Counted from the first letter of the stretch, positions 5,123 to 59,700 are shown. The stretch: 64,000 bases of DNA from Phaeosaccion multiseriatum (GCA_965112735.1 OZ218962.1:1674001-1738000); one strand, 5' to 3'. Program-made: numbers and translations. Notes: generated by a model from the sequence alone, not told the origin.

Positions 5123-5127
5123 TGAGG

Positions 5128-5224
5128 TATTGAGCTATCGCTTTTGCCGGCGTCAACCGGCACGCTATCAGCTATTGATGCGTGCCGAGGGGCTGTTAGC
5201 TGAGGTATCGGCGATAGCTCAATA
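5128..5224. repeat. Short inverted repeat (14-bp arms), possible MITE remnant
   Basis: tattgagctatcgc (5128-5141) and gcgatagctcaata (5211-5224). Confidence 0.5.
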
Positions 5225-25749: not shown

Positions 25750-27562
25750 ATAATAGGGTATGCCAGCATATAGTCGCGTGCGAGAGAAATACCTCAGTTC
25801 TTTCTCTCTCCCACGACTACCCTGCCGGGCAAAACTTTCGAACTCAGAGGGGATGGAGAGTGTTGGGTTGGCTGTTATGGCTGAGGTGCTGGGTTGGCAG
25901 CTGTCCCCCAATCAATCGTTGAGTTGGAATTTCCGCTTTGTATTGACAGTTATTTACATTTACACGTTATTTACACGCATGCACGCGCACACATATACCG
26001 AGACACACACACCGAGACACACACACACGCACAGACACTCACACGCATCCTCTCTCACACTTACTACCCTCCTACCCTGGTTGCACCACTGGTTGCACTA
26101 CCCTCCTTCCTCACACACACATACAGAGCCTGACACACACACACACACATACGCACAGACACCCACACACACACACCTACCTCTCACACTCACTACCCTG
26201 CTACCCTGGTCGCACAACTGGTTGCACTACCCTCCTCCCTCTGACCCTCTCAAGCGTCCGCTCCTGAAGCCCCCGAAGCCGCTGCTCCTCTGTCTTCCTC
26301 TTGTCTAACGCCTTCCCACCAATAACAACTCGGAGCCGCTCCTCTGTGAGACCCCCGTAGATGCCAATACAGTCGATGTTGGTGGCTCTGGAGATGGCGC
26401 CACGTAGGTGAGGCCACTCGTCTTCTCCTGTGTGCCCGGAACGAGCACCACCTTTCCCCATGGTTTGACCCTGCGCCTTCCACACCGTCCACGCCCAACT
26501 GAGTCTCAGGGGAAACTCCTTCCGAGTCCTGCTGGCCGATTGGCCACTAGCACTACCTTTCCACTCGGCGACGACTGGAGAGATAGATAGGGCCAGATAC
26601 ACTGATGGGCCCTTTCAGCTTCGTGTGAGCTGCACTGAGCCTGGGTGAGGCTTTGCTGTAACGCGACGCGCCCGTCGTCGTCCCCGTTCCACTGCTGCAG
26701 ACGGAGCGCACGGAAATGGACACGTCTGTTCCACTGCCGCGTGACCCATTCCGCGCTGTCAACATCTGCCCTCGCCTGCGCCAGCAGCTCTTCATACCCC
26801 TTGTCATGCCCGGCTGAGGCTGCCCTCACTTGCGCCAGCAACTCTTCATCCACCTTGTCATCCTCGGCTGAGGCTGCGTTCACTTGCGCCAGCAGCTCTT
26901 CATCCACCTTGTAATCCTCGGCTGATGCGACTGTGCCAACTGCTGGTGCTACTGCTGGTGCTACTGCAAGTGGAAGAGAGTGCTGAGGACATGATGGTCC
27001 CACACGATCTGCTATCAACCAGTCCCCTTCGTCCCCCACGTCATCCTCCTCGTCCTCGTCTCGGCTGGTGTCAGCAGGGTCGACAGGCTGGATGAGCCAC
27101 CCCTCCGATGTGCTCTCCTCCTCACAGCAGGCATACGCTGGTCATGGTCAGTATTGCCGCAGAAGAGCACGGTATGAGAAGAGGTGGAAGTCAGAGACGC
27201 GGGAGCAGCAGCAACCGAGAAGGAAGGAGCCAGACGCACGGGGCTCCACAGGAGTGGCGTATTGGGGATAGCTGTATCTCTTTCTATTGCTATGTGTGGA
27301 TGATTTGGTCGATTTGGTGAATTTCGAAATTTCCCCCCCATGGCCATCAAATTTCTGCCCAAAGTGCTCGGAGCGCTGAGAGCGCAAGACATACCCTTCC
27401 TGAGCGCTCAGGAAAAATTTGGCGGAAAAGTCGATGGCCCAAATTTGGGGCTCGGTACGGGGGGGGGGGGGGGGGGGGGGGAGGGGGGGGGAAATTTGAG
27501 AAATAGAGGAAACATCTCACATACGGTAAGATAGAAAGCGTACTCGCTACGCTCGCACGCGA
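25750..27562 (-). mobile_element. Non-autonomous Helentron/Helitron2-like element, copy A
   Basis: Asymmetric 11-bp inverted repeat tcgcgtgcgag (25774-25784) / ctcgcacgcga (27552-27562); hairpin tatgc-ca-gcata near the 3' end; GCGAGCGTAGCGAG motif at the 5' end; PIF1 helicase remnant. Confidence 0.75.
26201..26590 (-). pseudogene. Frameshifted PIF1-family helicase C-terminal fragment
   Basis: FPLRLSWAWTVWKAQGQTM...AISRATN; degraded relative to the copy at 27916-28930. Confidence 0.8.
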
Positions 27563-27915: not shown

Positions 27916-28930
27916 CTACCCTGGTTGCACTACCCTCCCCCCTCTGACCCTCTGAAGCGTCAGCTCCTGAAGCCTCAGAAGCCGCTGCTCCTCTGCCTTC
28001 CTCTTGTCTAACGCCTTCCCACCAATAACGACTCGGAGCCGCTCCTTTGTGAGACCCCCATAGATGCCAATACAGTCGATGTTGGTGGCTCTGGAGATGG
28101 CCACGTAGGTGAGGCCAGCTGTCTTCTCCTGTGTGCCCGGAACGAGCACCACCTTGCCCCTCATGGTCTGACCCTGCGCCTTCCACACCGTCCACGCCCA
28201 ACTGAGCCTCAGCGGAAACTGCTTCCGACTCCTGCTGACCGCTTGGCCACCAGCACTACCTTGCCACTCGGCGACGGCTGGAGAGATAGGCACCCAATGC
28301 TCCCTCCCTTCGCCCTCAAAGAAAGCCTCGCCTGTGTAAGAGGGAATGTCGACGACGACGTACTTGGCGAGGCATGGAGGAGGCAGCGGAGCACCGTCCG
28401 CGGCCCTGTCGAAGATGATGTCGACAACTGTTCCCGTGGCACCGTTGACAAGCCCAGTGGCAGTTTGCAGATTCCAAGTCAACAAGACCTTCGCCCCACG
28501 GGCCAGATACACCTCATTCTGCAAGCCTCGTGTATCCTCCTTGGACCCCTGCCTAGCTCCTGGACTGTTGTCAGCGTCCATACGCACAATGGGCGTCCCT
28601 AACGCTTTCAGCAGCCGCATGTTGTGCTTGAGAACATCGAGGTTCGTGGTAAACAACCAAGTCACATTGAGGAGCGTGTCGGCAAAGTGACCCGTCCACT
28701 CGTCCGCAGGCATGACCCCCTCGCAACGTGCCTGAATCCAATGCCAGTCGTCGTTGGTGTTGTCCCCATCCCTGAGCCTCAGCTGAAAGTCTCGAAAGCG
28801 CGCCGCCTGCGGGTGGTCATCCAGTCGCTGTATCTCATCAAGGCGCACCACACTTGTGAACATTTGGTACACGCCGAACCCCTCGTTACCCTGAATCGAC
28901 GTTGGCTTGCCCCAGAGACACGTGCTACCG
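27916..28930 (-). pseudogene. PIF1-family (Helitron-type) helicase, C-terminal half only
   Basis: GAKVLLTWNLQTATGLVNGATGTV, QFPLRLSWAWTVWKAQGQTM, YVAISRAT; no Walker A motif or Rep/HUH domain seen. Confidence 0.85.
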
Positions 28931-28941
28931 ACGGGCGGCAG

Positions 28942-29135
28942 CTTCATCCACCTTGTCATCCTCGGCTGAGGCTGCCCTCACTTGCGCCAGCAACTCTTCA
29001 TCCACCTTGTCATCCTCGGCTGAGGCTGCCCTCACTTGCGCCAGCAACTCTTCATCCACCTTGTCATCCTCGGCTGAGGCTGCCCTCACTTGCGCCAGCA
29101 GCGCTTCATCCACCTTGTCATCCTCGGCTGATGCG
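28942..29135 (-). repeat. 54-bp coding tandem repeat (ASAEDDKVDEELLAQVRA), ~3.5 copies; related array at ~26770-26930
   Basis: ORFs 28925..29467 and 26506..27039. Confidence 0.85.
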
Positions 29136-29920
29136 ACTGCTGGTGCTACTGCTGGTGCTACTGCAAGTGGAAGAGAGTGCTGAGGACATGATGGTCCCAC
29201 ACGATCTGCTATCAACCAGTCCCCTTCGTCCCCCACGTCATCCTCCTCGTCCTCGTCTCGGCTGGTGTTAGTGTCGTTCTCAGCAGGGTCGACAGGCTGG
29301 ATGAGCCACCCCTCCGATGTGCTCTCCTCCTTACAGCAGGCATACCCTAATCCAACTGCCATGGTCAGTCCTGCCGCAGGAAGAGCACGATATGAGAAGA
29401 GGTGAAAGTCAGAGACGCGGAAGCAGCAGCAACCGAGAAGGGAAGAGGCAGACGCACGGGGATCCACAGGAGCAGCGCCTTGGGGATAGCTGTATCTCTC
29501 ACCTCACAGCAGGATACGCTAATCCAACTGCCATGGTCAGTCTTCTTGCCGCAGGAAGAGCACGATATGAGAAGAGGTGGAAGTGAGAGACACGGGAGCA
29601 GCAGCAACCGAGAAGGAATAAGCCAGACGCACGGGGCTCCACAGGAGTGGCGCTTTGGGGATAGCTGTATGTCTTTCTATTGCTATGTGTGGATGATTTG
29701 GTCGATTTGGTGAATTTTGAATTCCCCCCCCCATGGCCATGAAATTTCTGCCCAAAGTGCTCGGAGCGCTGAGAGCGCAGAGCAGCGTTTCCTGAGCGCT
29801 CTGGAAAAATTTGGTGGAAAAGTCGATGGCCCAAATTTGGGGTGGGTGGGGCGGGGGGGGAAATTTGAGAAATAGAGGAAACATCTCACATACGGTAAGT
29901 TCTCTGTAGTCCGTATGTCT

Positions 29921-33761: not shown

Positions 33762-36700
33762 ATGGGCGTCCTTGGTAGTAGGGGGATCGAGTGCCCTCTC
33801 GTCCTGCTGCTGCTAGCGCTGCTGTTGGTGGCCACGGTAAAGGCCCATTGCCCGAACTTTTGTAGTGGGCATGGAGAGTGCGACGCCAACAATGTGTGCA
33901 ATTGTGAGGATCAGTGGGGCTTTGCGCCAGACTGCTCTCTGGCGCAGTGCCCGTCGGCTGCGTCATGGAGCGGCAAAGCCTACGCCGAGAACGAAGGCCA
34001 CTCGGTAATGGAGTGCAGCAACATTGGAACGTGCGATCGCAAAACCGGAGAGTGCGCCTGTCCACCAGGCTTCACGGGGCAGGCTTGTCAGCGCCTCTCT
34101 TGTCCCAACGACTGTTCCGGCAAGGGCTTGTGTGCATCACTAGAGCAGGCAGCCGAATTCTACGGATATGACTCGTCCGGGGTCGGAAACTACGATTACA
34201 CCACCTGGGATGCAGACGTGTCCACCATGTGTATCTGCGATATGGGCTTTGCCGGGGCAGACTGCTCCATTCGGCTTTGTCCCAAGGGAGACGATCCCGT
34301 CACCACCACGCAGGAGTTTAAAACCCTCCAGATGACCACCAATGCCACGGCAGGAGCTATGGAAGGACTCTTCTTGCTCACGTTCCAGGGCGAGAGCTTC
34401 ACCTTCAACGCCAATGCCTCTCTCTTCACTGCCGCCGATTGCGAGGATGCATGGAGAGGGCTGGAGAACGTCGAGGAGGTGACTTGTACCCGAGGGGAGA
34501 TTGACAACTCCACATTCGGAGCGACGTACACCATTGGTAGGTTCCTCTTCTCCTTTTCCCTAGCTGGAACCAAATGCGCAGCTCCCTGAGCCCTTCCCCC
34601 TTCCCGGCCCTTTCCCTCCCTCTTTGCCCTCAATACAACGACTCGCCCCTGCCAACGCTTCGAAAAAGCCATTGAGCAATGGCCGACACTGCCATATCAA
34701 AACAATATCTTCAATCACGACGGAGACCCTCCCCTCAGCTCCCTCGCTTGCGACACGTCGAACGTCACCGGCACCGGCGTGCAGTGCGCCTTTTCGAATG
34801 TGTATGACTCAGGCAACATCCGAGGTGAGTGGGTAAAGTGTCTTGCTTTTGCTTGCATCTCGCCAATCTTCTTCTCCCTGACGATTGACACTTCGTCCCC
34901 CCGATCCCCATCCCCCCTCCCCCCCCTAGAGTACGACTTCTGCTCACGGCGGGGCATTTGCGACTTCGACACAGGCCAGTGCTCCTGCTACCTCGGCTTC
35001 GGAGAAGCCAACTGCGGCACTGCCGAGGACTCCATCTATGGAAACGGTGACGTGGACATCTTACTCCTCGACGCGCAACAGACTGGCTTCACTGGTGCGT
35101 TCCGCTACCGGTGTAGACTGCCCTCCCTCCACCCCGCCCCTGATGAATGCCAATGCCTCTGTACCGCTCCCCCCCAACACACACTCCCTCTCAGGGAATA
35201 TGCTTCACTTCCAGACTACCGCAGAGGCAAGCAATGACTTCAATATCATTAAGGCGCAGTCAAGCGATGAGAACACGCTCATTGTCAAGGGGTCTGGCGA
35301 CATACGAATGCACAAAGGCGGTCTCACGATCGACGAGGGGGGGGAGACGATCACTGCTGGGGGCCTAACCATCACCGCAGGAGGTGAAACAATCACCTCG
35401 GGAGGTCTGACAATCACGGCAGGGGGCGAAACAATCACGACGGACGGCTTGACCATCGTGGGTGGAGGTGCCACGATTGAGAGCGGAGGATTGACCATAG
35501 AGCTCCACGGGGAGACCATTGAGAGCGGCGACTTGGTGCTGGATGCCGGCTCTATCACAGCCGCCAGTGGAGCACTGTATATCGATGGCATCACGAGCAC
35601 GGATCTCGTGGAAGTGACGGCCGGAGGGCTGGATGTCAGAGGGGGCGCCACAATCGAGTCTGGAGGCTTGTACGTCACTGCGGCGGGCCAAACCATCGCT
35701 TCCGGCGACCTCACGTTGGCCTTGGGGGACATTATGCTGACCGAAGGCTCTATCACAGCGAGCGCAGGAGACCTGGTGCTTGTGGCAGGCTCCATCACCG
35801 CCACGGCAGGCAACCTGGTGATGACGGAGGGTGATGTCATGATGACACAAGGCTCCATCACAGCGAGCGCAGGAGACCTGGTGCTTGTGGCAGGCTCCAT
35901 CACCGCCACGGCAGGCAACCTGGTGATGACGGAGGGGGATGTGATTGTGACGGCTGGAGACGTGTCGGTGACGGCTGGAGACGTGTCACTGGCGGCTGGC
36001 AATGTGCTGCTGACCGAAGGCTCTATCACCGCGAGCGCAGGCGACCTGGTGCTTGTGGCCGGCTCCATCACCGCTACGGCAGGCAACCTGGTGATGACGG
36101 AGGGGGATGTGATTGTGACGGCTGGAGACGTGTCGGTGACAGCTGGAGACGTGTCATTGGCGGCTGGCAATGTGCTGCTGACCGAAGGCTCTATCACCGC
36201 GAGCGCAGGCGACCTGGTGCTTGTGGCCGGCTCCATCACCGCTACGGCAGGCAACCTGGTGATGACGGAGGGGGATGTGATTGTGACGGCTGGAGATGTG
36301 TCATTGGCGGCTGGCAATGTGCTGCTGACCGAAGGCTCTATCACAGCGAGCGCAGGAGACCTGGTGCTTGTGGCCGGCTCCATCACCGCCACGGCAGGCA
36401 ACCTGGTTATGACGGAGGGTGATGTGATTGTGACGGCTGGAGATGTGTCACTGGCAACTGGCAATGTGCTGCTGACCGAAGGCTCCATCACCGCGAGCGC
36501 AGGCGACCTGGTGCTTGTGGCCGGCTCCATCACCGCTACAGCAGGCAACCTGGTGATGACGGAGGGGGATGTGATTGTGACGGCTGGAGACGTGTCGGTG
36601 ACAGCTGGAGACGTGTCTCTGGCGGCTGGCAATGTGCTGCTGACCGAAGGCTCCATCACCGCGAGCGCAGGAGACCTGGTGCTCGTGGCCGGCTCCATCA

Positions 36701-39700
36701 CCGCCACAGCAGGCAACCTGGTGATGACGGAGGGTGATGTGATTGTGACGGCTGGAGACGTGTCACTGGCGGCTGGCAATGTGCTGCTGACCGAAGGCTC
36801 TATCACCGCGAGCGCAGGCGACCTGGTGCTGGTGGCCGGCTCCATCACTGCAACAGCAGGCGACCTGATTATGACGGAGGGTGATGTGATTGTGACGGCT
36901 GGAGACGTGTCGGTAACGGCTGGAGACGTGTCTCTGGCGGCTGGCAATGTGCTGCTGACCGAAGGCTCTATCACCGCGAGCGCAGGAGACCTGGTGCTGG
37001 TGGCCGGCTCCATCACCGCTACGGCAGGCAACCTGGTGATGACGGAGGGTGATGTGATTGTGACGGCCGGAGACGTGTCACTGGCGGCTGGCAATGTGCT
37101 GCTGACCGAAGGCTCCATCACCGCGAGTGCAGGCGACCTGGTGCTTGTGGCAGGCTCGATCACCGCCACGGCAGGCAACCTGGTGATGATGGAGGGCGAC
37201 ATCCTTATTGGTGCCGGAGACATTTCTTTAGATGTAGGCAATGTGCTGCTGACCGAAGGCTCTATCACCGCGAGCGCAGGCGACCTGGTACTTGTAGCCG
37301 GCTCGATCACCGCCACAGCAGGCAACCTGGTGATGACGGAGGGTGATGTGATTGTGGCGGCTGGAGACGTGTCGCTGACGGCTGGAGACGTGTCATTGGC
37401 GGCTGGCAATGTGCTGCTGACCGAAGGCTCCATCACCGCGAGCGCAGGAGACCTGGTGCTTGTGGCCGGCTCCATCACCGCCACGGCAGGCAACCTGGTG
37501 ATGACGGAGGGTGATGTGATTGTGACGGCTGGAGACGTGTCACTGGCGGCTGGCAATGTGCTGCTGACCGAAGGCTCTATCACCGCGAGCGCAGGCGACC
37601 TGGTGCTGGTGGCAGGCTCCATCACCGCCACAGCAGGCAACCTGGTGATGACGGAGGGGGATGTGATTGTGACGGCTGGCGACGTGTCGGTGACAGCTGG
37701 AGACGTGTCTCTGGCGGCTGGCAATGTGCTGCTGACCGAAGGCTCTATCACCGCGAGCGCAGGCGACCTGGTGCTGGTGGCCGGCTCCATCACCGCTACA
37801 GCAGGCAACCTGGTGATGACGGAGGGGGATGTGATTGTGACGGCTGGCGACGTGTCGGTGACAGCTGGAGACGTGTCTTTGGCGGCTGGCAATGTGCTGC
37901 TGACCGAAGGCTCTATCACCGCGAGCGCAGGCGACCTGGTGCTCGTGGCCGGCTCCATCACCGCCACGGCTGGCAACCTGGTGATGACGGAGGGTGATGT
38001 GATTGTGACGGCTGGCGACGTGTCACTGGCGGCTGGCAATGTGCTGCTGACCGAAGGCTCCATCACCGCGAGCGCAGGCGACCTGGTGCTTGTGGCAGGC
38101 TCCATCACCGCTACAGCAGGCAACCTGGTGATGACGGAGGGTGATGTGATTGTGACGGCTGGAGACGTGTCACTGGCGGCTGGAGACGTGTCGGTGGCAA
38201 CTGGCAATGTGCTGCTGACCGAAGGCTCTATCACCGCGAGCGCAGGCGACCTGGTGCTGGTGGCCGGCTCCATCACCGCCACGGCAGGCAACCTGGTGAT
38301 GACGGAGGGTGATGTGATTGTGACGGCTGGAGACGTGTCATTGGCGGCTGGCAATGTGCTGCTGACCGAAGGCTCTATCACCGCGAGCGCAGGCGACCTG
38401 GTGCTTGTAGCCGGCTCCATCATCGCCACGGCAGGCAACCTGGTGATGACGGAGGGTGATGTGATTGTGACGGCTGGAGACGTGTCGGTGACAGCTGGAG
38501 ACGTGTCATTGGCGGCTGGCAATGTGCTGCTGACCGAAGGCTCCATCACCGCGAGCGCAGGAGACCTGGTGCTTGTGGCAGGCTCGATCACCGCCACGGC
38601 AGGGAACCTGGTGATGACGGAGGGTGATGTGATTGTGACAGCTGGAGACGTGTCATTGGCGGCTGGCAATGTGCTGCTGACCGAAGGCTCTATCACCGCG
38701 AGCGCAGGCGACCTGGTGCTGGCGGCCGGCTCCATCACTGCTACGGCAGGCAACCTGGTGATGACGGAGGGGGATGTGATTGTGACGGCTGGCGACGTGT
38801 CGGTCACGGCTGGAGACGTGTCTCTGGCGGCTGGCAATGTGCTGCTGACCGAAGGCTCTATCACCGCGAGCGCAGGCGACCTGGTGCTTGTGGCCGGCTC
38901 CATCACCGCCACGGCAGGCAACCTGGTGATGACGGAGGGTGATGTGATTGTGACGGCTGGCGACGTGTCGGTCACGGCTGGAGACGTGTCTCTGGCGGCT
39001 GGCAATGTGCTGCTGACCGAAGGCTCTATCACCGCGAGCGCAGGCGACCTGGTGCTTGTAGCCGGCTCCATCACCGCCACGGCAGGCAACCTGGTGGTGA
39101 CGGAGGGGGATGTGATTGTGACGGCTGGAGACGTGTCGGTGACAGCTGGAGACGTGTCATTGGCGGCTGGCAGTGTGCTGCTGACCGAAGGCTCCATCAC
39201 CGCGAGCGCAGGAGACCTGGTGCTTGTGGCAGGCTCGATCACCGCCACGGCAGGCAACCTGGTGATGACGGAGGGTGATGTGATTGTGACGGCTGGCGAC
39301 GTGTCGGTCACGGCTGGAGACGTGTCTCTGGCGGCTGGCAATGTGCTGCTGACCGAAGGCTCTATCACCGCGAGCGCAGGCGACCTGGTGCTGGCGGCCG
39401 GCTCCATCACTGCTACGGCAGGCAACCTGGTGATGACGGAGGGGGATGTGATTGTGACGGCTGGAGACGTGTCATTGGCGGCTGGCAATGTGCTGCTGAC
39501 CGAAGGCTCTATCACCGCGAGCGCAGGCGACCTGGTGCTTGTGGCAGGCTCTATCACCGCCACGGCAGGCAACCTGGTGATGACGGAGGGTGATGTGATT
39601 GTGACGGCTGGAGACCTGTCGGTAACGGCTGGAGACGTGTCACTGGCGGCTGGCAATGTGCTGCTGACCGAAGGCTCTATCACCGCGAGCGCAGGAGACT

Positions 39701-42700
39701 TGGTGCTTGTGGCCGGCTCCATCACCGCCACAGCAGGCAACCTGGTGATGATGGAGGGCGACATTCTTATTGGTGCCGGAGACGTTTCTTTGGATGTAGG
39801 CAATGTGCTGCTGACCGAAGGCTCTATCACCGCGAGCGCAGGCGACCTGGTGCTTGTGGCCGGCTCCATCACCGCCACGGCAGGCAACCTGGTGATGACG
39901 GAGGGGGATGTGATTGTGACGGCTGGAGACGTGTCACTGGCGGCTGGCAATGTGCTGCTGACCGAAGGCTCTATCACCGCGAGCGCAGGAGACCTGGTGC
40001 TTGTGGCCGGCTCCATCACCGCCACAGCAGGCAACCTGGTGATGACGGAGGGTGATGTGATTGTAACGGCTGGAGACGTGTCACTGGCGGCTGGCAATGT
40101 GCTGCTGACCGAAGGCTCCATCACCGCGAGCGCAGGAGACCTGGTGCTCGTGGCCGGCTCCATCACCGCCACAGCAGGCAACCTGGTGATGACGGAGGGT
40201 GATGTGGTTGTGGCGGCCGGTGATGTGTCGGTGACGGCTGGAGACGTGTCACTGGCGGCTGGCAATGTGCTGCTGACCGAAGGCTCTATCACCTCGAGCG
40301 CAGGAGACCTGGTGCTTGTGGCAGGCTCCATCACCGCCACGGCAGGTGACCTGGTGATGACGGAGGGTGATGTGATTGTGACGGCTGGAGACGTGTCGGT
40401 AACGGCCGGAGACGTGTCACTGGCGGCTGGCAATGTGCTGCTGACCGAAGGCTCTATCACCGCGAGCGCAGGAGACCTGGTGCTTGTGGCCGGCTCCATC
40501 ACCGCCACGGCTGGCAACCTAGTGATGACGGAGGGTGATGTGATTGTGGCTGCCGGCGAAGTGACGGTATCGGCTGGAGACGTGTCACTGGCGGCTGGCA
40601 ATGTGCTGCTGACCGAAGGCTCCATCACCGCGAGCGCAGGCGACCTGGTGCTGGTGGCAGGCTCGATCACTGCTACAGCAGGCAACCTGGTGATGACGGA
40701 GGGTGATGTGATTGTGACGGCTGGAGACGTGTCGGTGACAGCTGGAGACGTGTCATTGGCGGCTGGCAATGTGCTGCTGACCGAAGGCTCTATCACCGCG
40801 AGCGCAGGAGACCTGGTGCTTGTGGCAGGCTCCATCACCGCCACGGCAGGCAACCTGGTGATGACGGAGGGTGATGTGATTGTAACGGCTGGAGATATGT
40901 CACTGGCGGCTGGCAATGTGCTGCTGACCGAAGGCTCTATCACCGCGAGCGCAGGAGACCTGGTGCTTGTGGCCGGCTCCATCACCGCCACAGCAGGCAA
41001 CCTGGTGATGACGGAGGGTAATGTGATTGTGACGGCTGGAGACGTGTCACTGGCGGCTGGCAATGTGCTGCTGACCGAAGGCTCTATCACCGCGAGCGCA
41101 GGAGACCTGGTGCTTGTGGCAGGCTCCATCACCGCCACGGCAGGCAACCTGGTGATGACGGAGGGTGATGTGATTGTAACGGCTGGAGATATGTCATTGG
41201 CGGCTGGCAATGTGCTGCTGACCGAAGGCTCTATCACCGCGAGCGCAGGAGACCTGGTGCTTGTGGCCGGCTCCATCACCGCCACGGCAGGCAACCTGGT
41301 GATGACGGAGGGTGATGTGATTGTGACGGCTGGCGACGTGTCACTGGCGGCTGGCAATGTGCTGCTGACCGAAGGCTCCATCACCGCGAGCGCAGGCGAC
41401 CTGGTACTTGTGGCCGGCTCCATCACCGCTACGGCAGGCAACCTGGTGATGACGGAGGGTGATGTGATTGTGACGGCTGGAGACGTGTCGGTGACAGCTG
41501 GAGACGTGTCATTGGCGGCTGGCAATGTGCTGCTGACCGAAGGCTCCATCACCGCGAGCGCAGGAGACCTGGTGCTTGTGGCCGGCTCCATCACCGCCAC
41601 GGCAGGCAACCTGGTGATGACGGAGGGTGATGTGATTGTGACGGCTGGAGACGTGTCATTGGCGGCTGGCAATGTGCTGCTGACCGAAGGCTCCATCACC
41701 GCGAGCGCAGGAGACCTGGTGCTCGTGGCCGGCTCCATCACTGCTACGGCAGGCAACCTGGTGATGACGGAGGGTGATGTGATTGTGACGGCTGGAGACG
41801 TGTCACTGGCGGCTGGCAATGTGCTGCTGACCGAAGGCTCCATCACCGCGAGCGCAGGCGACCTGGTACTTGTGGCCGGCTCCATCACCGCTACGGCAGG
41901 CAACCTGGTGATGACGGAGGGTGATGTGATTGTGACGGCTGGAGACGTGTCGGTGACAGCTGGAGACGTGTCATTGGCGGCTGGCAATGTGCTGCTGACC
42001 GAAGGCTCCATCACCGCGAGCGCAGGAGACCTGGTGCTTGTGGCCGGCTCCATCACCGCCACGGCAGGCAACCTGGTGATGACGGAGGGTGATGTGATTG
42101 TGACGGCTGGAGACGTGTCATTGGCGGCTGGCAATGTGCTGCTGACCGAAGGCTCTATCACCGCGAGCGCAGGCGACCTGGTGCTGGTGGCAGGCTCGAT
42201 CACTGCTACAGCAGGCAACCTGGTGATGACGGAGGGTAATGTGATTGTGACGGCTGGAGACGTGTCACTGGCAACTGGCAATGTGCTGCTGACCGAAGGC
42301 TCCATCACCGCGAGCGCAGGAGACCTGGTGCTCGTGGCCGGCTCCATCACCGCTACAGCAGGCAACCTGGTGATGACGGAGGGTGATGTGATTGTGACGG
42401 CTGGCGACGTGTCGGTAACGGCTGGAGACGTGTCACTGGCGGCTGGCAATGTGCTGCTGACCGAAGGCTCCATCACCGCGAGCGCAGGAGACCTGGTGCT
42501 TGTGGCAGGCTCCATCACCGCCACGGCAGGCAACCTGGTGATGACGGAGGGTGATGTCATCATGACACAAGGCTCCATCACAGCGAGTGCAGGAGACTTG
42601 GTGCTTGTGGCAGGGTCCATCACTGCCACAGCAGGGGACTTGGTGATGACGGCAGGCTCCATCACTGCATCAGCGGGTGACGTGACGGCAGTGAGCTTCG

Positions 42701-43245
42701 TGACGGCATCGGACCGGCGCCTGAAGGTTGCCGTAGTCCCCTTGGAGGGGACTCTACAGGAGCTGCTGCGGCTCAAAGGCGTCAGCTTCCAGTGGAAACC
42801 CGACACTCCTGGGTACCTGTCCAAGGGCGATGTGACGCAGTTGGGCTTCGTGGCCCAGGAAGTGCTGGAGGTGTTTCCGCTGCTGGTGCAGGAGCCGTCG
42901 ACCCCGGACGGGCACCTGAGCGTGAACTATCCGGGCTTCGTACCGCTGTTAGTGGAGAGCGTCAAGGATTTGCACGCGCTGAGCTGCGCCCGCGACGACG
43001 CTCTATCGGAGGCGCAGGCTCAGGCAGCGGAGCAGGGGCGACAACTAGAGAGGCAGGGGGGCCAATTAGAGAGGCAGGGGGCCCAATTAGAGAGACAGGG
43101 GGCCCAAGTCGAGAGACAGGCGGCCCAGCTCGAAGCCTACGCGGCCCAAGTGGAGCACTTAAAGGCGCAGATGGCGTCGTTGGAGCAGTCCTTGGAGGCT
43201 CTTCTCACCACCGCTGAGCTCCGAAACTCTCGGCCGACACAATAA
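33762..43245 (+). CDS. Giant secreted protein (~3048 aa): Sig1/Ocm1-like EGF head + 7-aa beta-repeat shaft + Peptidase_S74 intramolecular chaperone + coiled coil
   Basis: Exons 33762-34536, 34669-34824, 34930-35094, 35195-43245 splice in frame (all phase 1). Signal peptide, EGF-like modules, and the S74 signature SDRRLK...LGFVAQEV...VNYPGFVPLLVESVKDL. Confidence 0.85.
35725..42690 (+). repeat. Coding tandem array of 21-bp units grouped into 147/168-bp higher-order units
   Basis: GSITASA-GDLVLVA-GSITATA-GNLVMTE-GDVIVTA-(GDVSVTA)-GDVSLAA-GNVLLTE repeated about 40+ times. Confidence 0.97.
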
Positions 43246-43511: not shown

Positions 43512-44634
43512 ATGAGTCGACCACCTCCTCGGGGCCGAGGAGGGGGCTTCCGGTAAGAGGACGATACGGAATGGGAGAGAAGGAAAGGAAGATTTTCTTA
43601 CCCGCCATATATATCATCCCTTGTTCCTTCTCTCTCTCCCTCCCCGTGTCGACCGAGAGCAGGGGCGGCATGCGAGGGGGAAGAGGCGGCAGGGGGGGCA
43701 GAGGAGGAGGGCGCTTCTCAGATGGACCTCCGAGCGAAGTGGTCGGTGAGTGTGACGAGCTATGACGAGTTGATGCAATGCCACAATACTGCAGGTTGTG
43801 CACGTGCTCTTTATTGATGTACGCCTGTTCCAATATCTTCTCGCGTCTCGTCTCATGCAGAGCTCGGTGTCTTCGTTCACTCATGCGAAGGAGAAATGGT
43901 GTGCAAGGTAAGCAAAGCCCCTCAAGAACGTGCGAGAAGCGAATAGAGTTAAGGTGGACGGGAGGGAGTGGGAGCGGAAGACTTGTTTGTTGCATGGCAT
44001 TGCCCACATGTCTAGCATAATGGTGGCTTCCCTCAGTCGACCCATTTTCTCTCCACTCGCCTGCGTACATAGTATCCGAGGTGGTACCTCTCTTGTTCAA
44101 ACTGAAGTCAATGTCTCTTCTCTTGGCCTTGATATTAGTTTCGCATCTCCTCTCCTCCTCACCCACCCCCCCCCCCCCCCGCCCTCCACTCCTGCGCTGC
44201 TGCTGCTCCCCACTCTTCAGTTGACAAATACAATGGTGCCGTACTTCAACGCAGGGACATTTCTGCAAAACAAGACGCAAATAGGCCAGGTTGACGAGAT
44301 TATGGGGCCCATCAATGAGGTGTTCTTCACAGTCAAGCCGAACAATGGGGTCAACCCCACGTCCTTCCAGTCCGGGGATAAAGTGTACATTGGGACTGAC
44401 AAGCTATTACCAATGTCGAGGTTCACCAACCCCGGCAGGGGAGACTCTGGAGGGCGCGGAGGCGGGAGAGGAGGGCGAGGAGACAGAGGAAGAGGCAGGG
44501 GAGGAGGCCGAGGAGGGGGGCGAGGAGGATTTGGGGGAAGAGGAGGGGGGAGGGGAGGCAGAGGAGGCTTTGGCGGCGGGGGGAGGTTCGGAGGGCGCGG
44601 GGGAGGGAGGGGAGGCGGACGGGGCAGGTTTTAG
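43512..44634 (+). CDS. GAR1: H/ACA snoRNP subunit Gar1, multi-exon
   Basis: RGG boxes at both ends; GPPSEVV|ELGVFVHSCEGEMVCK|...VPYFNA...IGQVDEIMGPINEVFFTVK...KLLPMSRF. Confidence 0.95.
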
Positions 44635-47514: not shown

Positions 47515-49477
47515 TTAACGCTGCTGCACATGGCTGGCGCTGCTGTCTCCAGCCGGCTTCACGGCTCCACGCCGCTGCTGTGTATCCAACTGCTGCTGCT
47601 CATGGCTGCTCTCCAGCGTCTTTTTGACGGCTGCGATGAGTGCCTCTGAGTACCTCTCGAGCACCGCCGACGACAAGGGCGCCTCTTGTCCTTGCCCCTG
47701 CCCATGCCCCTGCCCTCCCGCGCTGCTGCTGAGGGTACCCGACTGCAGGCCGAGGCCAAAGCCAGTGGCCAATCTGCCGCTGTCGCTGGTGCCCGTGCCA
47801 CCGCCGCCCCTCCCGACGTGTCCGGAGAGTGTGAATCCCCCAGTGCCCTCGAGTAAGTCCCCGACCGTTGCGAAGCCCTGCCTGAAGGACTGCAGCAACT
47901 CGTCCGTCTCATTCTCGTCCTCCGCCCCTCTCCCAGTGCTGTTTGTGTCTCCCAGAGTCGCGCTCCCCCCCCCCCCTGCGGTCTCTCCTCCCCTGCTGCC
48001 GGTGGCAAGCTCTTGATAGAGCTCGGCTGCCACTTGCGCTGACTTTCGAAGCTGCGTGAGTGCATCCAAGTACTCCTGAGTCCTCCGCGGGAGTCGCGGT
48101 GATGGGGAGGAGCCAAGGAGAGGCGGTGGTGGCCTCTTACTCTCGCCGTCTTGCCCCTGCCCCCCCTCCTCGCCCTCATTCTCCTCTGTCGCAATTCTGC
48201 CCCCGTAGGCATCTTGCCCTGCCCTGTCTTCCCCCCTTGTCAATGCCTCGTCAACGTCCTCTTGCTCCTCCTCCTGCTCCTGCTCCTCCTTCTCCCCCTC
48301 CTCCGCCTTTCTCTTCTCCTCCTCCTCCTCCTCCTCCTCCTCCTCCTCCTCCTCCTCCTCCTCCTCCTCCTCCTCCTTCTCCTCCACCTCCTCCTCTCCC
48401 TCTCCCTCCCCCTCCTCCTCCTCCTCCTCCTCCTCCTCCTCCTCCTCCTCCTCCTCCTCCTCCTCCTCCTCCTCCTCCTCTCCCTCTCCCTCTCCCTCCT
48501 TCTCCACCCCCCCTCCCCCTACCGCCCTCCTCTCCGAGTCCTCCCTGTCATCGTCTTCTTCTTCTTCGCCCCCCCTCTCCAAGCCCCCTCCGTCGAACGC
48601 ATTCGAGTCTGTCATGCGTGTTTCCGATAGCGCGTTCTTGAGAGAGTCCTGCTTCCTCTCCCCAAGAACGCCACTGCTACTACCGAAGGGCCCCTCCTTA
48701 GCCTCGTCTCCACTCTCCACCCCTGGGGGCGGGGGCAGGGGAGGCATGGCCATAAACACACTGGGGTCGGCCTCCTCGTCCTCCTCTTCCTCCTCTTCCT
48801 CCTCTTCCTCCTCTTGGGTCTCTGCAGTCGCCCGCGGCTCCAAGGGGTCCAACTCGAGATGTTGGTTGTCCAGAAGGGCCTTCCCGTCGCAGCCAAGGTA
48901 CCCCATGGCCTCCAAGTGCTGACGCATGCTGGCCACTGCGTCCTCCGTCTCCCTGTGCTTGTGCTTGAGGTCCTCCCCAGTGTCTCCCCTCTCCCCCTCG
49001 TCCGTCGCTACCATCGCTGCCGTTTCCCTCGAGAGAGGAGGTGGGGGGGGCACGTTAGGGTGGTCTGCGTGCTCCGGGTCGTCCCCTCCCCCCCCCCCCA
49101 CTCGCCCCGCTGTATCTGTTCCATTCATCTCCTCTTTTTCTACATTCGCCTGAGCCCGATGGAAGAAGTTGAAGCTGTGGCTCAGGCGCAGGTCTTGAGA
49201 GTCGAGCGAAGAAGAGGCCATTGAGGCCACTGAGGATGCTTGTCCTGCCTCTGAGTGGGGGCTTACTGTAGCAGGCGGCACCTCTTTCCCAGTCCCCTCC
49301 TCAGCTCTGTCCTCTGGCTCCCCCCTTGGAGAAGACGTCACGTGCGCCTTCCCCTCCTGTTCACCGCTCTCACCACTCTCCGTTGGAGATACACACGTGT
49401 CCTCGACTACAGTATTCTCTGGGGAAGCTGCTTCCGGCGCCAATGTGCAAGTCAAGGCAAGCGCTGGCGTTTCCACG

Positions 49478-49508
<31 letters not shown>

Positions 49509-52440
49509 CGCTTACTCCTCCTTCTTCTCTGCCCCCCCCTCCTTCTGCCCTGTCGCCCTTCCCCACCTTTCCTCTACCAGGCGAGAACGCCGTCCATTTC
49601 CCCCGCTTCCCGCTCTCCTTGCCTGTGGCAGGGCCAGACTCCCCTGCTGCGGCCCCCTCCACCGACCGCACCACCAGGCCCTTGCCCGTCTGCTGTGCCC
49701 ACGCTGGAAGGTTGGACCCAGTAAACTTCAGGCGAAGCTTGGCCTCTTGCGCTGCTGCGTCAGCGCCCCCTCCACCCCCGGAAGACCCTGCGGCTGCCCC
49801 CTTCTCCAGTTGCTGTACCACCAACTGCGGCTGCTGCGCGGTCGCCGCCTCTACTCCTGCGGGGGAGAGTGGTCGCTCCGGATGAAGCTCGTGGAGGCGC
49901 TCTTTCATCGCCTTTTGCAGGTCGGTAGACAGTCTCCAGACGAAGATGCAGCCATCCCCCCCGATGGAGATGAGCCTCTTGCCGTCTCCGCTGAAGCGCA
50001 GGCCCGTCACGAGCTCGCTGTGCCCCGCCACCTTGGCGAGACACCTACCCGAGTAGAAGTCAAACAGACGGATCCACTTATCGAAGCTACAAGTGGCTGC
50101 ATACATGCCTGCCGGGTCCAGATCTACCCTGTACATCTCGGCGGAGGCCCCCTCGGGTCGGTACCCCCTGACGTGCCTGCCGTTGCTCATGTTCCAGATG
50201 TTGAGGCGCTTGTCCTGCCCCGCTGACACCATGTACTTGTTGGTGGGGTCCACGTCCAGCCCGTAGATGGTACCCTGCGGCACGCTGATGGCCTTGTGCC
50301 GGGTCACTTGCTTGCCTCTGACGTGGTTGATAACCAGCATCTTATCGCCCCCCGCGGACAGCAGTCGGCGGCCGTCCTGGCTGAACTTGATGGCGTTGAC
50401 GGAGGAGGAGTGGTTCTCCAGAGTCGCGACAAGGGGGTGGCGGGCGGTGCTGCCTCCTGGCGGTTTGGCTGCGCCTCCGCTGTTCGCCGACGCGTTGAAC
50501 ACGTGCACCAGTCTGTCTCGACTTGCCGACGCGAGCAGAGTCAGGGTCGGTGAGGGGGGCTGCTGCTGGTGCTGCTGCTGCTGCTGGTGGTGGAGAGGCA
50601 CCCATCTGGGCGGCGGCTTCGGCAGCACTCCCTGAGAAGCACTCTCACCACCTTCGCCAGCTGTTGGCGTATCACTAACTACCACAGAGGGTACCGCTGC
50701 TGCCGCCTCCACCATGACGGGCGAGTAGGCCATGCTCAGCACCTCTGCGTCGTGCGCGGCCTGCGTGTGCTGTAGTCGCATACTGGCCAAGTCGTACACG
50801 CGTATATTGCCCTGCTTGTCTCCGCACGCAAGCTGCCCCCCCGCGGGGTGCACTGCCAGACTGCGCAGGACGTTGTGTGGCTTGGGGGACGAGTCTGGGA
50901 TCTCTGTGTCGGGAACCGAAGCGGCCAGAGCGTCGTCGAAGCCGTTCCTGCTGCTTGCGAGCCCGTCCTTCTCCTTCTCATCCGCGTACAGAATCCGCAC
51001 GAGGTGCTTGCAGTACACGTTGGACCAGCGGGCCGCTGCTGCCCCCGCTGCCGAGGAGGAGGAGGAGGAGGAGGAGGATGCTCCATCCAGGGACCCGAGA
51101 TCCCACAGGCGGACCGTATTGTCTGCCGAGCACGTGGCAAACACATTGGAAGGCAGGCCCTTATGGTGCCCCTCTCCCGCCGCTGCAGGTCCCAGTGGGG
51201 GTGTTGGAACTGTCTGCACATCCCAGATGCAGGCCCCGTGGTTGAGGAAGCTGCGGTACCTGCCCACGTTGTGACGGTCCGTAATGTCCCATATGAACAT
51301 GCTGCGGTCGGCGTACACCGCCACCACCTTGGTTCCCGACGGGCTGAGACGCACCCCCAACACGGCGGGGTACCTGGCCTGCTTACCCTCCGGCAAGAGC
51401 CGCTGCTGGGCGAGCTCCTCAAGAGAGGCGACGTTCGCCCCTCCCAGCGGAGGGGGTTTGGGGAGCGTCGACACGTACTCGAGACTCGTGGCGCTGAAGA
51501 GCCGCAGCAAGCCGTCCGAGCAGGCCACTGCCAGCAACTCGTTGTTGTACAAGCTAATCCCGTACGCCGCAGTCGCCTCCAAGTTGACCCACTGAGACAT
51601 TACCCGCGAGGGCGAGAAGACACACAGCACGCCCCCCGAGGTGACGCAGAAGGCGGCCCCCTCCTCCCCGCAGACTACATCCATAAAAGTGCTCCCCCGG
51701 AGACCCTCGAGGATACTCGCTGGCCGCCCGTCCATGCGAATCACGCCGTCCTCCGCCTTTTCCCCCTTCGGGTACCTACTCCTGCGGCTGTCGGCCGGCA
51801 CTTCCTCCCCGTCCTCCTCTTCAAAGTACCAAAACTTGACATGCTTGTCCCCACAAGTCACGAGAAAGGAGCCGTCGCTACTGAACGCGAGAGAGCGTAC
51901 CTTTTGGCTCACCTTCGCGCTGGCCACCCGCCTCGCGCCCGCCGAAGAAGGAGGAGACGGGGGTGATGGCTCCGCCTCTGGCCTTTTCTTCCCCGGGGAG
52001 GCTTTCTCTCTCCCCTCCAGCCCCAAGTCCCACACCTGCAGCATTCGATCGTACTTGAAGCCCGCCGACACGAGCATGTCCCCCCTTGGACCAAAGGTAA
52101 GGCAGCTCACCCCAAAGCGGTGCCCATTCTTCAGCTCTCTCAGCACGGCGCCCGTGGCCAAGCTCCAGACAACCACGTTCGGTTGGTGGCCCCTCTCCCC
52201 CACAGCCAGCATACCTCCATCGCTGCTAAAAGCCAGGCAGGACACCGTCTTGCCCGCGCGGAAATAGCGAAATTGCCGGTTACGACGCGGCTGGTAGATC
52301 ACCACTACGCAGCCGGCTGGGTACGCCACGTCCCCTGTGCAAGGGTTGACAGCGAGGGCCCCGTTGTGCAGACATGTCTGTCCGATCACGCGGTCCAGGG
52401 TGAGCTGCGGAGCCAACGCCGCCGCTCCTCCAGCTGCCAT
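47515..52440 (-). CDS. WD40 protein of the WDR62/MAPKBP1 family (single exon, 1641 aa)
   Basis: VAYPAGCVVVIY, LAVGERGHQP, YADRSMFIWD, TCSADNTVRLW, HDAEVLSMAYS, LASASRDRLVHVF, GHSELVTGLRFS, GDGCIFVWRL. Confidence 0.9.
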
Positions 52441-56763: not shown

Positions 56764-59700
56764 ATGGCCGCTTCGGGGGCTGCCGTAATGCGGCCGAGCT
56801 TCAGCCTCTCTGGGGGAAACCCAGACCTGTCGCTCCATCCCATTGATGGCTTGGCCCTGGACACGACAGGGCTGTTTGATGGTGACAAGCTGAAGAGCGT
56901 CCTGGACACGGTGTACGGGAGGATTATGCACCTAGAAACCACTATGAAGAAATCGGTGGAGGCCGCTCTTGCAGCTGCCGTTATCGAGCCGCCAGACCCG
57001 GTTGAAGAGGAGGGGCCGAATGTAGATTTCGACGCCTTGTCGGATGCGGACAAATTTCGCGAGCTGCGCTTGGAGACTAGGAGGCTGAAGAGGGAGCAGA
57101 AGCGATTTATGGGCGCCGCTAGGCGGGACGCTGCGAGGGAGGCCGCGGCGAAGCAGATTCAGGCTTTGGAGCTTTCCGCTCTCCTGCTAAAGGTAGAAGA
57201 CAAGGTGGGCAGTCAGGAGCTGGGCTCGGCCCTTGACACTAGAATCGAGGCTGCTCAGGCAGCCATGAGAGAGGAGGTGAAGGCGCATGCAGCCGCTCTG
57301 CATGATAGGCTGGCCCAGGAGGTGCAAGGGGTGCATTCTGCACTGCTGGCAATGCAGGGGCAGGTGGACCAGGTGGCAGCGTCGACAAGTAGTTACGGCA
57401 GCTCGATGGGCCCTCGAATACCTCAAGCCCCCACAAAGTCTGTAGCACGGAAGTCGTTGGAGGGTAAAGAGGAGTCAACTGTGCCCGAGGACGAGGACGG
57501 CGACGAGTTCGAGGACGCGGTGCGGCAAGTGGTGCACAAGACGTTGGAGGAGGCGGGCATGGACGGGCTGTCCAACAAGGCCTTCACCGCAGTGGTGGAC
57601 GAGCTCAACCAGCTCAAGGATGAAGTTGTGGATGACAAAGCCGTCCTGTCTGCGCTGGAGAGTGAGGTGGGGGAGAGACTGGACACCCTGACAGAGCTGA
57701 TACCACAGGTTTCCGTTTTGGACGATGCCCGCCGAGAGGCAGGAGAAGAAGTGGCACAGCTCCGCAAACAAGTCGAGGACGGGAACGACCATCTGCTTTG
57801 CCTTGTGTCCACGGCGGAGGAGGCCAGAAAAGAGGGTTTGGAAGAGAGCAGCAGGGACCACGAGGACCTGCGACGCGAGGTGGATGCGCTGAAAGACAGT
57901 TTCGGGCAGGATTGCGCTGACCTGGTCGCGGAGTCCGCGATGAGGGTGTCAGGCAAGGTGGAGCAAACGCAGGACCGCCTCCTCAAGCTCGTGGATGAAG
58001 TGACGAAGGGCTTCGCGCGGTGCGAAGGCCAGCTGGAGGGGATGGACAAGGCCGCCAAGGCGCAGGGCGAGGCCGTCGGGGGGAGGATACGAGACTTGGA
58101 ATGCCACGCGACGGACCTGCACGCCGCCGACGCAGACACGGCCACGTCTATACTGGGAATGCAGAAGAAGCTGGCCGAGCTGGCGGATGAAACCACGCAG
58201 CAAAAGAGGCAGCTCAAGGGGCAGATGGAAGAGCTGCTTGGCACAAAGGGCCACCTTGGCACGCTGGAGGGAGCTGTGCAGGAGCTGGAGGAGAAGGTAG
58301 ACGTCGGGGTGGGCAGGAGGCTACAGGAGTTCGAGGCAGCTGGACATGCCCTGAGGCAGCAGGTGTGGCAGGAGGTTGAGCAGGGCCGGAGAGAGATGAT
58401 GGACGTCATGGCCGTGGGCTTGAAGTCTTCCTCCTCCTCCTCCTCGTCGTCGTCGTCCAAGTCGCGCAGCTTCGACTCGCTGGACGAGTTGAGAGACGCC
58501 ATGAGGGAGGAGGCGGAGGAGAGGACGTCAGAGATGTCCCGTCTGGTCCGGAGCAACATTGGGACAGTTAGCAGGCTGCGGCAAGTGGAGGGAGGCATGC
58601 ACGCGCTGTGCACGAGAGAGTTGTTCTGGGAGAGGGTGGATGTGAAACTCAAGGCGCACCGCACAGAGCTCAATCGGATCTGCACAAGCATGGAGGCCAA
58701 GAGTGTCGGTTCGCGTCTCACACACGAGGCTCTCACCTTCCTCGCGGGGAATCTGCAGAGAGTCGGCAAGGTGGGGGGGGGAGGGAGGGAGAGAGGGAGG
58801 GAGGGAGGGGGGGGGGGAGAGAGGGGGGAAGGGAGTGAGTGAGTGAGTGAGTGAGTGAGTGAGTGAGTTAGCGCCTGAGTGACTGAGCGAGTGAGTGGAG
58901 TGAGTGATGAGTTAGCGCCTGAGTGACTGAGCGAGTGAGTGAGTGAGTGAGTGAGTCAGTCAGTCAGTAGTGAGTGAGTGTGTGAGTCAGTCAGTAGTGA
59001 GTGAGTGTGTGAGTCAGTAGGTGAATGAGTGAGCCAATCAGTCAGTAGAGGAGGGACTGAGGCCGCCAAAGTGTTCGGCGCGTCCTCATCACGCTTCTCT
59101 GGCCTCTCCCCCCCTCCCCCCCTCCCCCCAGCTCATCGCCCAGAAGGCAGACTACGACATCATGCTGGTGGTGGCGAACAGCAAGAACCCCGCCGAGGAG
59201 GGCAGCGGCTGGGACGACGCCGTAGAGACGCTAAGGCAGGCGTCCGTCAAGAGCTTCCTCACCGCAGCGAGGAGCGAGCAGGAGGCCACCAGCCCTGTGC
59301 CTGCGCAAGATCAGAGGCACACCATTCGACAAGACTTTTACAAGCAGTGCTCGGACGCCATCAGGTAGGGTATCGGGTGTCAGGATAGCTCGCTGCTTAG
59401 TCACTAGGGTCCATTGCCATTTGGCGAGGGGGGGCGGGGGGGCGGGGGGGGCGGCGCAGGCGAAAAGCGGTAGGGGAGGGCGAAGAAGCGTCTACACCCC
59501 AACGTACCATTTCAACCCTCCCCACCCCTCCCCTTCTCGCGTCCCCACTCCTCTCCCGCCTCCCCTGACTAGGGTGGCTGTGTCCAAGTACAGACCCACC
59601 CAACCAGGGAGCACTCTGCTGGGCAAAGTCAAGATGCGGCCCAAGGCGTGCTTGGCATGTGATCGCCCCTTCTCCGATGGCGTCCCTGGCAACGGTGGCG

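Follow-up and report, generated by a model that had tools for sequence, protein, structure and literature searches.

The stramenopiles are defined by tripartite tubular hairs, which reverse flagellar thrust. Hairs of Ochromonas have between one and three terminal filaments as well as lateral ones, the latter in two sizes, according to the accessible portion of one description (PMC2108286), and in marine heterokonts the terminal filaments are 0.3-0.4 µm long and serve a role that is not known (PMC9310263). No protein assigned to the terminal or lateral filaments was found in the literature searched. Two further systems are relevant to what follows. In MyRF, a Ser-x4-Lys dyad cuts the chain on the N-terminal side of the serine, and cleavage requires the trimer, whose formation is driven mainly by a C-terminal coiled coil (PMC8326128). 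In T4 gp5, a repeat of the form VxGxxxxx builds a triple-stranded beta-helix in which 187 residues span 100 Å and which has been called the longest and most regular helix of its kind known (PMC4576200). Here we describe a gene whose product recalls all three systems, in a stretch of 64,000 nucleotides from Phaeosaccion multiseriatum (GCA_965112735.1, OZ218962.1:1674001-1738000; hereafter the window, with positions counted from its first letter). Its product combines a head of the tubular-mastigoneme type, a long shaft of heptapeptide repeats and a C-terminal Peptidase_S74 chaperone, and it very probably forms a secreted, self-processing trimeric fibre.

The gene model is established. Four exons on the plus strand (33762-43245) splice into a coding sequence of 9147 nt that specifies 3048 residues and contains a single stop codon, the terminal one. 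The ATG at 33762 is preceded by an in-frame TAA 9 nt upstream. In an alignment of the spliced N-terminus with 12 stramenopile relatives, all three exon junctions are free of gaps, and one of these relatives belongs to a 90% cluster that also contains a transcript-derived protein. The N-terminus resembles a signal peptide; both the peptide and its cleavage site were judged by eye, and hydrophobic leaders of a similar kind open the sequences of the relatives. Because an open frame of 8.2 kb continues unbroken and in phase into a domain that exceeds its curated Pfam threshold, chance can be ruled out. A preliminary description of this DNA had proposed a four-exon splice into about 3048 residues, a signal peptide, an EGF head like that of mastigoneme proteins, an S74 domain opening with SDRRLK and a C-terminal coiled coil. 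The splice was confirmed at 3048 residues, with GT-AG introns and joins supported by homology, the signal peptide was recovered by eye in residues 1-28, and the evidence given below bears out the remaining three.

Residues 29-339, the head, contain 28 cysteines and all four N-glycosylation sequons. Within exon 1, Pfam recognises EGF_2 with 41.7 bits (cut-off 22.1) and EGF_Teneurin with 38.4 bits (cut-off 24.3). When exon 1 was compared with all chains of the PDB, it matched six protein chain types of entry 9ufe, with E = 8.7e-40 to 5.2e-27, and these chains carry the names "Tubular mastigoneme protein", OCM3, OCM5 and OCM6. The next match had E = 1e-4. What had been a resemblance to mastigoneme proteins is thus raised to a tested homology with a solved structure. 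Judging from the chain names and from near-complete matches, the source of the solved tube is probably Ochromonas danica. All six chain types have a C-terminal EGF that is matched by the EGF unit of exon 3, in one instance at residues 335-362 of 366. Exon 2, searched alone against the PDB, gave no match; the equivalent stretch of the Chrysoparadoxa relative P0033, in which head and neck are contiguous and the head is 54% identical to that of the window protein, aligns with the 366- and 368-residue chains of 9ufe, and these two chains align with P0033 through their final residues. By sequence comparison, then, exons 1-3 are one complete OCM-type subunit, and since exon 3 matches the terminal EGF of the tube-forming proteins, it is exactly at the end point of these proteins that the neck, shaft and chaperone are added. 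The closest heads are those of Chrysoparadoxa (54% identity) and Tribonema (53%). No match in the head search was literally named "mastigoneme" or "Sig1", and the link came from the PDB sequence search. Two other affiliations of the EGF units were considered and rejected: EGF_TEN (PF25024), which would indicate a teneurin, scores 41.5 bits with a cut-off of 65, and a match to lamprey tenascin involves EGF units only.

At the other end of the protein, PF13884 is recognised with 51.2 bits (gathering score 22, E = 1.5e-13) over profile positions 1-57 of 58, and the match starts at SDRRLK. The serine, aspartate and lysine of this motif are invariant in all 33 aligned C-termini, 23 of them from stramenopiles and 10 of phage or bacterial type, and the spacing Ser-x4-Lys is that of S587/K592 in MyRF and S911/K916 in endoNF (PMC8326128). 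An AlphaFold2 (AF2) monomer model computed from the 33-row alignment has a mean predicted local distance difference test score (pLDDT) of 84; it shows a compact domain followed by a helix of about 100 residues, with pLDDT of 80-98 over domain and helix and about 98 in the helix itself (model residues 197-296), where a coiled coil is predicted. The DNA that encodes this helix contains a 21-nt tandem repeat (43032-43127). When the domain was submitted to Foldseek, it matched the MyRF ICA (7dc3) with probability 1.0 and a template-modelling score TMt of 0.68, the endosialidase chaperone 3gw6 and the GA-1 chaperone 3gud with 0.98 each, and the L-shaped fibre of T5 with its chaperone (4uw8) with 0.82. 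A viral library yielded 210 matching proteins at E <= 1e-3; almost all are phage tail fibres or neck appendages, with some from giant viruses. A scan of viral sequences with the single C-terminus gave one trivial match of 26 residues and no close viral relative. A C-terminal search confined to proteins of 1500-4800 residues gave, among the matches listed, only fibres of phage or bacterial type at 25-44% identity, with neither close kin nor an entry for the window protein itself, and under this length filter it is uninformative as to the family. By analogy with these systems, the chain should cleave itself between Ala2870 and Ser2871, which would release a piece of 19.5 kDa and leave a chain of 272 kDa.

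Between head and chaperone lie a short neck and the shaft. The neck carries the motif DILLL..x..YTGN.L.L.T..A.S.DFN.I.A......L.V.G.GD..M..GGLTI., and dozens of relatives have it directly joined to the head, at E values down to 1e-45. The shaft consists of 2464 residues whose register is unbroken over 352 heptads. Glycine occupies one position in 335 of these, the next position is D, S or N, and hydrophobic residues fill two alternating positions; a residue count of the translated protein found no cysteine in the shaft. The preliminary description had the repeat type right and counted about 340 heptads, a figure that has to be replaced by 352 (residues 407-2870). Larger units, 42 super-repeats of 49 or 56 residues (147 or 168 nt), take in most of the heptads. 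Among the 49-residue units the mean nucleotide identity is 93.5%, and codon differences are synonymous in 1326 cases and non-synonymous in 414. Because divergence at this level of identity is mostly synonymous, the array is neither a pile of identical copies nor a decaying one. In the AF2 monomer model each heptad forms one short beta strand, and a heptad with one glycine and two alternating hydrophobic residues would fit one face of a triangular prism in the manner of T4 gp5. If a rise of 0.43-0.48 nm per repeat is assumed for a triple helix, 352 repeats on gp5 geometry would give a shaft of about 150-170 nm, and the earlier estimate of about 150 nm is consistent with the dimensions of gp5 (187 residues in 100 Å; PMC4576200).

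These parts suggest a mechanism whose domain logic would be that of a phage tail fibre, with an N-terminal attachment module, a beta shaft and a C-terminal chaperone that removes itself. In the endoplasmic reticulum, the C-terminal coiled coil and the chaperone domain would set three chains in register. The registered C-termini would then template a triple-stranded beta-helix that zips toward the N-terminus and, once the trimer had formed, the dyad Ser2871-Lys2876 would cut each chain before Ser2871 and free the 19.5-kDa piece. This would leave a stiff, three-chain fibre (272 kDa per chain) that extends over about 150-170 nm and bears one mastigoneme-type head per chain, all three at the same end. 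By analogy, three OCM-type heads would offer a natural means of docking on a lattice of OCM paralogues, and most likely they would attach to the surface of the tubular hair shaft or insert into it, the fibre thereby forming the fine terminal or lateral filaments of flagellar hairs. Trimer formation, the triple-helical fold and self-cleavage, and above all the location in mastigonemes, are what we infer from the domains. As a whole, a secreted homotrimeric triple-beta-helix fibre with mastigoneme-type heads, serving as a filament of flagellar hairs, is our best explanation, and we consider it on balance probable.

The preliminary description had known of no account of this architecture and had proposed a search of other genomes for the same combination of EGF units, repeats and S74 domain. 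The combination was found in oomycetes and in ochrophytes. An exhaustive profile-free search with the head returned 4905 proteins, 510 of them at E <= 1e-30, and these include two classes. Proteins of the first, about 650-750 residues long, contain two copies of the head with 40-45% identity conserved from diatoms to oomycetes, and include the zoospore-membrane protein PPTG_08833 of Phytophthora parasitica. Those of the second, the fibre type, share the neck and the shaft with glycine at period 7. A local search found the S74 domain as well in at least 30 of the class-2 proteins retrieved, at least three more have an SDRRLK motif with insertions, and in nine of nine that were tested the Pfam thresholds for both EGF and PF13884 were passed. 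Class 2 comes from oomycetes, chrysophytes, dictyochophytes and metagenome contigs. Members with S74 include proteins of Phytophthora pseudosyringae (KAG7386686, 1415 residues), P. fragariae (KAE9149646, 2235 residues), Pythium insidiosum, Ochromonas/Chlorochromonas danica (EP00981_P006069), Dinobryon and Octactis speculum; fragments with head and neck come from Aphanomyces stellatus, Triparma, Tribonema and Chrysoparadoxa, and the Aphanomyces fragment includes the shaft too. Among the members are two MMETSP transcripts flagged as complete, and because both carry the head and the S74 domain, the two lie on one mRNA in these relatives. The window protein is the longest of the members retrieved and the sole one whose array is so homogenised.

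In a tree built by a quick search from the head columns alone, all 52 heads that are followed by a neck fall on one side of a branch with a Shimodaira-Hasegawa-like approximate likelihood-ratio (SH-aLRT) support of 99, which parts the fibre-type heads from those of the 700-residue type. The window gene is sister to that of Chrysoparadoxa. Since oomycete and ochrophyte members are both found on the fibre-type side, the fusion appears to predate the divergence of these two groups; the family is thus an old one among stramenopiles. The 3048-residue window protein has an appended shaft and S74 domain, whereas the one- and two-module proteins of the superfamily have about 200-750 residues. For this reason, and in view of the branch just described, we file the gene on its sequence as a distinct subfamily of the mastigoneme superfamily and not as an OCM orthologue. 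The database records of class 2 either lack a name or carry an automatic one, such as "Peptidase S74 domain-containing protein". In the literature searched, no paper linked S74, intramolecular chaperones or tail fibres to mastigonemes or to the hairs of flagella, and S74 proteins in stramenopiles were not discussed in any. The claim of novelty therefore stands in part: the building blocks are known and relatives are already in databases, where they make up a recurrent and ancient stramenopile family and not a one-off, but the architecture and the family are undescribed in the literature searched.

Two relatives deserve separate mention. The protein P0112 (1376 residues) has the same head, neck and shaft, and instead of SDRRLK and S74 its C-terminus has ...PDYVFEPDYPLMPL... 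and then a coiled coil; the chaperone end may therefore be exchangeable, as it is in phage fibres. In P0086 of P. fragariae (2235 residues), the shaft is of an oomycete type that is not composed of pure heptads, and it repeats a unit of about 65 residues, ..FTG..L.L......F.LI.A......F.V...G.TTI..GG, that resembles the neck motif. The neck may thus be a building block of the shaft that can itself be multiplied.

Where the fibre is placed on the cell is the least certain part of our reading. The solved tube of 9ufe has no S74 domain in any of its shaft chains, and the family member of O. danica matches those chains only as a paralogue. Because the solved tube lacks a chain of this kind, a hair filament is favoured as the location; that the fibre is a mastigoneme filament seems to us finely balanced, with a slight lean toward doubt. 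A more far-reaching proposal, which we advance tentatively as possible, is that the family supplies the missing protein of the terminal or lateral filaments or of both, in the form of record-length triple beta-helices (about 15 times T4 gp5) that would be folded by a phage-type chaperone fused to a mastigoneme subunit before the divergence of oomycetes and ochrophytes, and whose length would depend on, and be quickly adjusted through, the number of heptad copies. Data from zoospores of P. parasitica bear on this question. PPTG_14518, a protein of 812 residues with an EGF-like annotation and the Gene Ontology term "protein autoprocessing", was detected in zoospore membranes, as the accessible part of the supplement records (PMC12223298), and its length and annotation link it to the family, of which it is probably a member. 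In the accessible text of that paper it is not discussed, and supplementary file 1 lists it just as an "EGF-like domain-containing protein" (PMC12223298). As a separate observation, other fibre modules of bacterial or phage style also occur among the P. parasitica zoospore-membrane proteins in the accessible part of that file (PMC12223298).

Several observations weigh against this reading. In the same supplement, as far as it is accessible, PPTG_14518 has low and similar counts in the membrane fractions of cell body and flagella, unlike PnMas1-3, which are 3- to 5-fold enriched in the flagellum (PMC12223298). The head superfamily of 4905 proteins is very large, and not all of its members need be parts of mastigonemes. 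The head tree contains several fibre-type subclades, which hints at more than one role. The predicted fibre reaches about half of the 0.3-0.4 µm reported for terminal filaments in other species. A Foldseek search with the AF2 monomer of the shaft gave weak beta-solenoid matches only, and the count of 352 is that of the assembly, taken from a near-identical array of 7.4 kb.

The first three of these points would be accommodated if the same self-processing trimeric fibre were not flagellar at all, and belonged instead to the surface or matrix of zoospores, gametes, cysts or vegetative cells, where it might act in adhesion, as a coat or in prey capture; the head would then be a general EGF-rich module for docking or oligomerisation, as the many "tenascin-like" proteins of unplaced location in its superfamily might also suggest. 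Set against this possibility, proteins that structure has shown to form the mastigoneme tube are colinear with the head and highly similar to it, and mastigonemes are assembled within the cell body, so that a cell-body signal is compatible with them. To our knowledge, moreover, every named organism with a member of the family has a flagellate stage with tripartite hairs. We regard a non-flagellar surface fibre as unlikely, although it is the foremost alternative.

The solenoid matches raise a different question, namely whether the shaft might be a single-chain beta-solenoid with three heptads per turn and a length of about 56 nm, like bactofilins, ice-binding proteins or haemagglutinins, in which case the S74 domain would be only a propeptide that removes itself. 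One stretch of the shaft also gives a borderline match to Fil_haemagg (24.4 bits, cut-off 21.5). Membership in the two-partner-secretion (TPS) haemagglutinins was rejected, the N-terminal TPS domain scoring 13.1 bits where 33.5 are required. A predictor that models only monomers is incapable of showing a triple helix, and the S74 domain acts in homotrimers in MyRF and endoNF (PMC8326128) and, in the accessible text of a report on it, in T5 pb1 (PMC4690869). Cleavage in MyRF is restricted to the trimer (PMC8326128), and the helix of about 100 residues that follows the domain in the window protein has its counterpart in MyRF, where such a helix drives trimerisation. A solenoid is accordingly improbable in our judgement, and a trimeric fibre remains the preferred structure. 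The array itself, of 7.4 kb and with copies about 93% identical, would be hard to assemble, and an expansion of a shorter array by the assembly, or an unexpressed pseudogene, could be suspected. This is very improbable, given that the 8.2-kb frame is intact and in phase into a conserved domain, that differences between copies are mostly synonymous, that all splice sites are intact and that relatives of up to 2235 residues follow the same plan. Finally, a viral fibre gene recently acquired from a giant virus or polinton-like element, or a contaminant, is hardly credible: S74 fibres are known from algal giant viruses and from polinton-like ones, but the gene has three introns of the spliceosomal type, a stramenopile-specific head and ordinary nuclear neighbours, its family is spread over oomycetes and ochrophytes, and the C-terminal searches described above found no close viral relative.

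Table 1. Positions of the features of the fibre gene in the window, with the basis of each assignment.
Feature	Position	Strand	Description	Basis
Start codon and signal-peptide-like N-terminus	33762..33845	+	residues 1-28, MGVLGSRGIECPLVLLLLALLLVATVKA	translation, by eye
Exon 1	33762..34536	+	signal peptide, then four Cys modules of EGF type and the beginning of the next domain	translation, Pfam and PDB 9ufe matches
Intron 1	34537..34668	+	132 nt, GT-AG, phase 1	junction gap-free against 12 relatives
Exon 2	34669..34824	+	remainder of the non-EGF domain of the head (IEQWPTLPYQNNIFNHDGDPP...)	homology to relatives
Intron 2	34825..34929	+	105 nt, GT-AG, phase 1	join supported by relatives
Exon 3	34930..35094	+	the head's final EGF unit (CSRRGICDFDTGQCSCYLGFGEANC), then first part of the neck (DVDILLLDAQQTGFTG)	PDB 9ufe matches
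Neck	35016..35316	+	residues ~340-406; follows the last EGF, spans intron 3	
Intron 3	35095..35194	+	100 nt, GT-AG, phase 1	join supported by relatives
Exon 4	35195..43245	+	neck, shaft, S74 domain, coiled coil and stop codon	open frame
Antisense open reading frame	35205..42824	-	2539 aa, runs opposite the repeat array; neither head nor S74 domain in frame	
Shaft	35317..42708	+	residues 407-2870; 352 heptads G-[DSN]-hydrophobic-x-hydrophobic-x-[AE]	
SDRRLK	42709..42726	+	predicted catalytic Ser2871 and Lys2876; directly adjoins the shaft	alignment
Peptidase_S74 / intramolecular chaperone core	42709..42888	+	PF13884	Pfam and Foldseek
C-terminal helix	42928..43227	+	~100 residues, QLERQGA-type heptad; predicted trimeric coiled coil that would be freed along with the chaperone	AF2

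The long antisense open reading frame (ORF) listed in Table 1 is a by-product of the stop-free repeats and lies outside the gene. Homology in this region is confined to the plus frame, and because the head and the S74 domain lie in that frame, plus is the coding strand. Codon-position bias was dropped as a guide to the strand, the wobble positions of the antisense ORF coinciding with those of the sense frame.

The window has the character of ordinary eukaryotic nuclear DNA, with about 58% GC, and contains the fibre gene as a single copy. Its neighbours include genes for a dyskerin-type pseudouridine synthase, a PP2C, a SNARE like syntaxin-6, COG6, exportin-1/CRM1, a Gar1/Naf1 protein, an ArfGAP and a large WD40 protein. 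The dyskerin/Cbf5-type TruB-PUA protein (3022-4239, plus strand) and the Gar1/Naf1-domain protein (43930-44634, plus strand) are two components of the H/ACA small nucleolar ribonucleoprotein encoded less than 40 kb apart; the latter gene lies directly downstream of the fibre gene, and the pairing of the two components is probably a coincidence. A single ORF of 1641 residues (47515-52440, minus strand) encodes a double beta-propeller protein like MABP1/WDR62 or EML. A (TCCTCC)n tract in this ORF, especially at 48257-48520, encodes an acidic run and explains the extreme GC/AT skew of that 2-kb bin.

Other repeats are scattered through the window. A (TCCC)n microsatellite of about 119 units with 99% matches (4647-5123) explains a pair of spurious, overlapping minus-strand ORFs (4545-5156 and 4558-5274), and further tetranucleotide microsatellites are (GAGT)n with about 51 units (58833-59033) and (GTCA)n with about 39 units (63743-63896). 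One 54-nt tandem repeat forms two arrays, at 26766-26925 and 28942-29131. Of these one abuts an ORF on the minus strand (27916-28959) that matches the 2B domain of Pif1 helicases weakly (E = 2e-4, under the Pfam cut-off), and the other lies 1 kb from it. A 175-nt repeat is found at 29329-29674. Together these elements may be a repeat-rich remnant, or one of a mobile element, upstream of the neighbourhood of the fibre gene.

The gene provides a specific, widely conserved and experimentally tractable candidate family for the hair filaments, with members in O. danica and in transformable Phytophthora. If the proposed mechanism is correct, it would be a second, independent cellular use of the intramolecular-chaperone mechanism of phages after that in MyRF, and one that serves the original purpose of building fibres. 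A shaft that is indeed triple-stranded would far exceed in length any regular triple beta-helix known, and it would be of interest to protein engineering. Should the location on hairs prove wrong, an undescribed class of eukaryotic extracellular fibre would still have been defined.

It is useful, finally, to compare the window protein with the systems it resembles. Hairs of Chlamydomonas are described in the literature searched as fibrous polymers of glycoprotein. The likeness of their protein MST1 to the proposed fibre is one of analogy alone, as both would be extracellular and MST1 forms a polymer of flagellar hairs. We take MST1 to be a glycoprotein unrelated to the window protein in sequence and in fold. 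With the triple-stranded beta-helix of T4 gp5 the shaft shares a short, strictly periodic glycine repeat, alternating hydrophobic residues that would point inward and a polar ladder position. Its period, however, is 7 and not 8, the eight-residue VxGxxxxx motif is not matched, it has 352 repeats in place of about 23, and it would be triple-stranded only by inference; because of the period, it is at most an analogue of gp5 and not a member of that group. MYRF/MrfA supplies the best structural match of the C-terminal domain (7dc3) and has the dyad and the C-terminal helix in common with it. In MYRF, which needs the trimer, the domain frees a DNA-binding trimer with a short beta stalk from the membrane of the endoplasmic reticulum, whereas the window protein has neither a transmembrane segment nor a DNA-binding domain, and the piece released is predicted to be the chaperone. 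The fibres of phages (K1F endosialidase, T5 pb1 and GA-1 gp12) share with it a beta shaft, PF13884 with Ser-x4-Lys and C-terminal helices, and in both the N-terminus is the end of attachment. It differs from them in being cellular, secreted and encoded with introns, in having a mastigoneme subunit and not a virion adaptor as its anchor, in the absence of a receptor-binding or enzyme domain before the chaperone, and in a shaft that is far longer and more regular. The proteins of mastigonemes themselves, OCM1-6 of Ochromonas (9ufe), Sig1 of diatoms and brown algae and PnMas1-3 of Phytophthora, share with it a signal peptide and a cysteine-rich module composed of EGF-like units, a non-EGF domain and a final EGF. 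These proteins either end after the last EGF or repeat the module once, to reach about 700-750 residues, whereas the window protein continues from the same point into a neck, a shaft of 2464 residues and an S74 domain.

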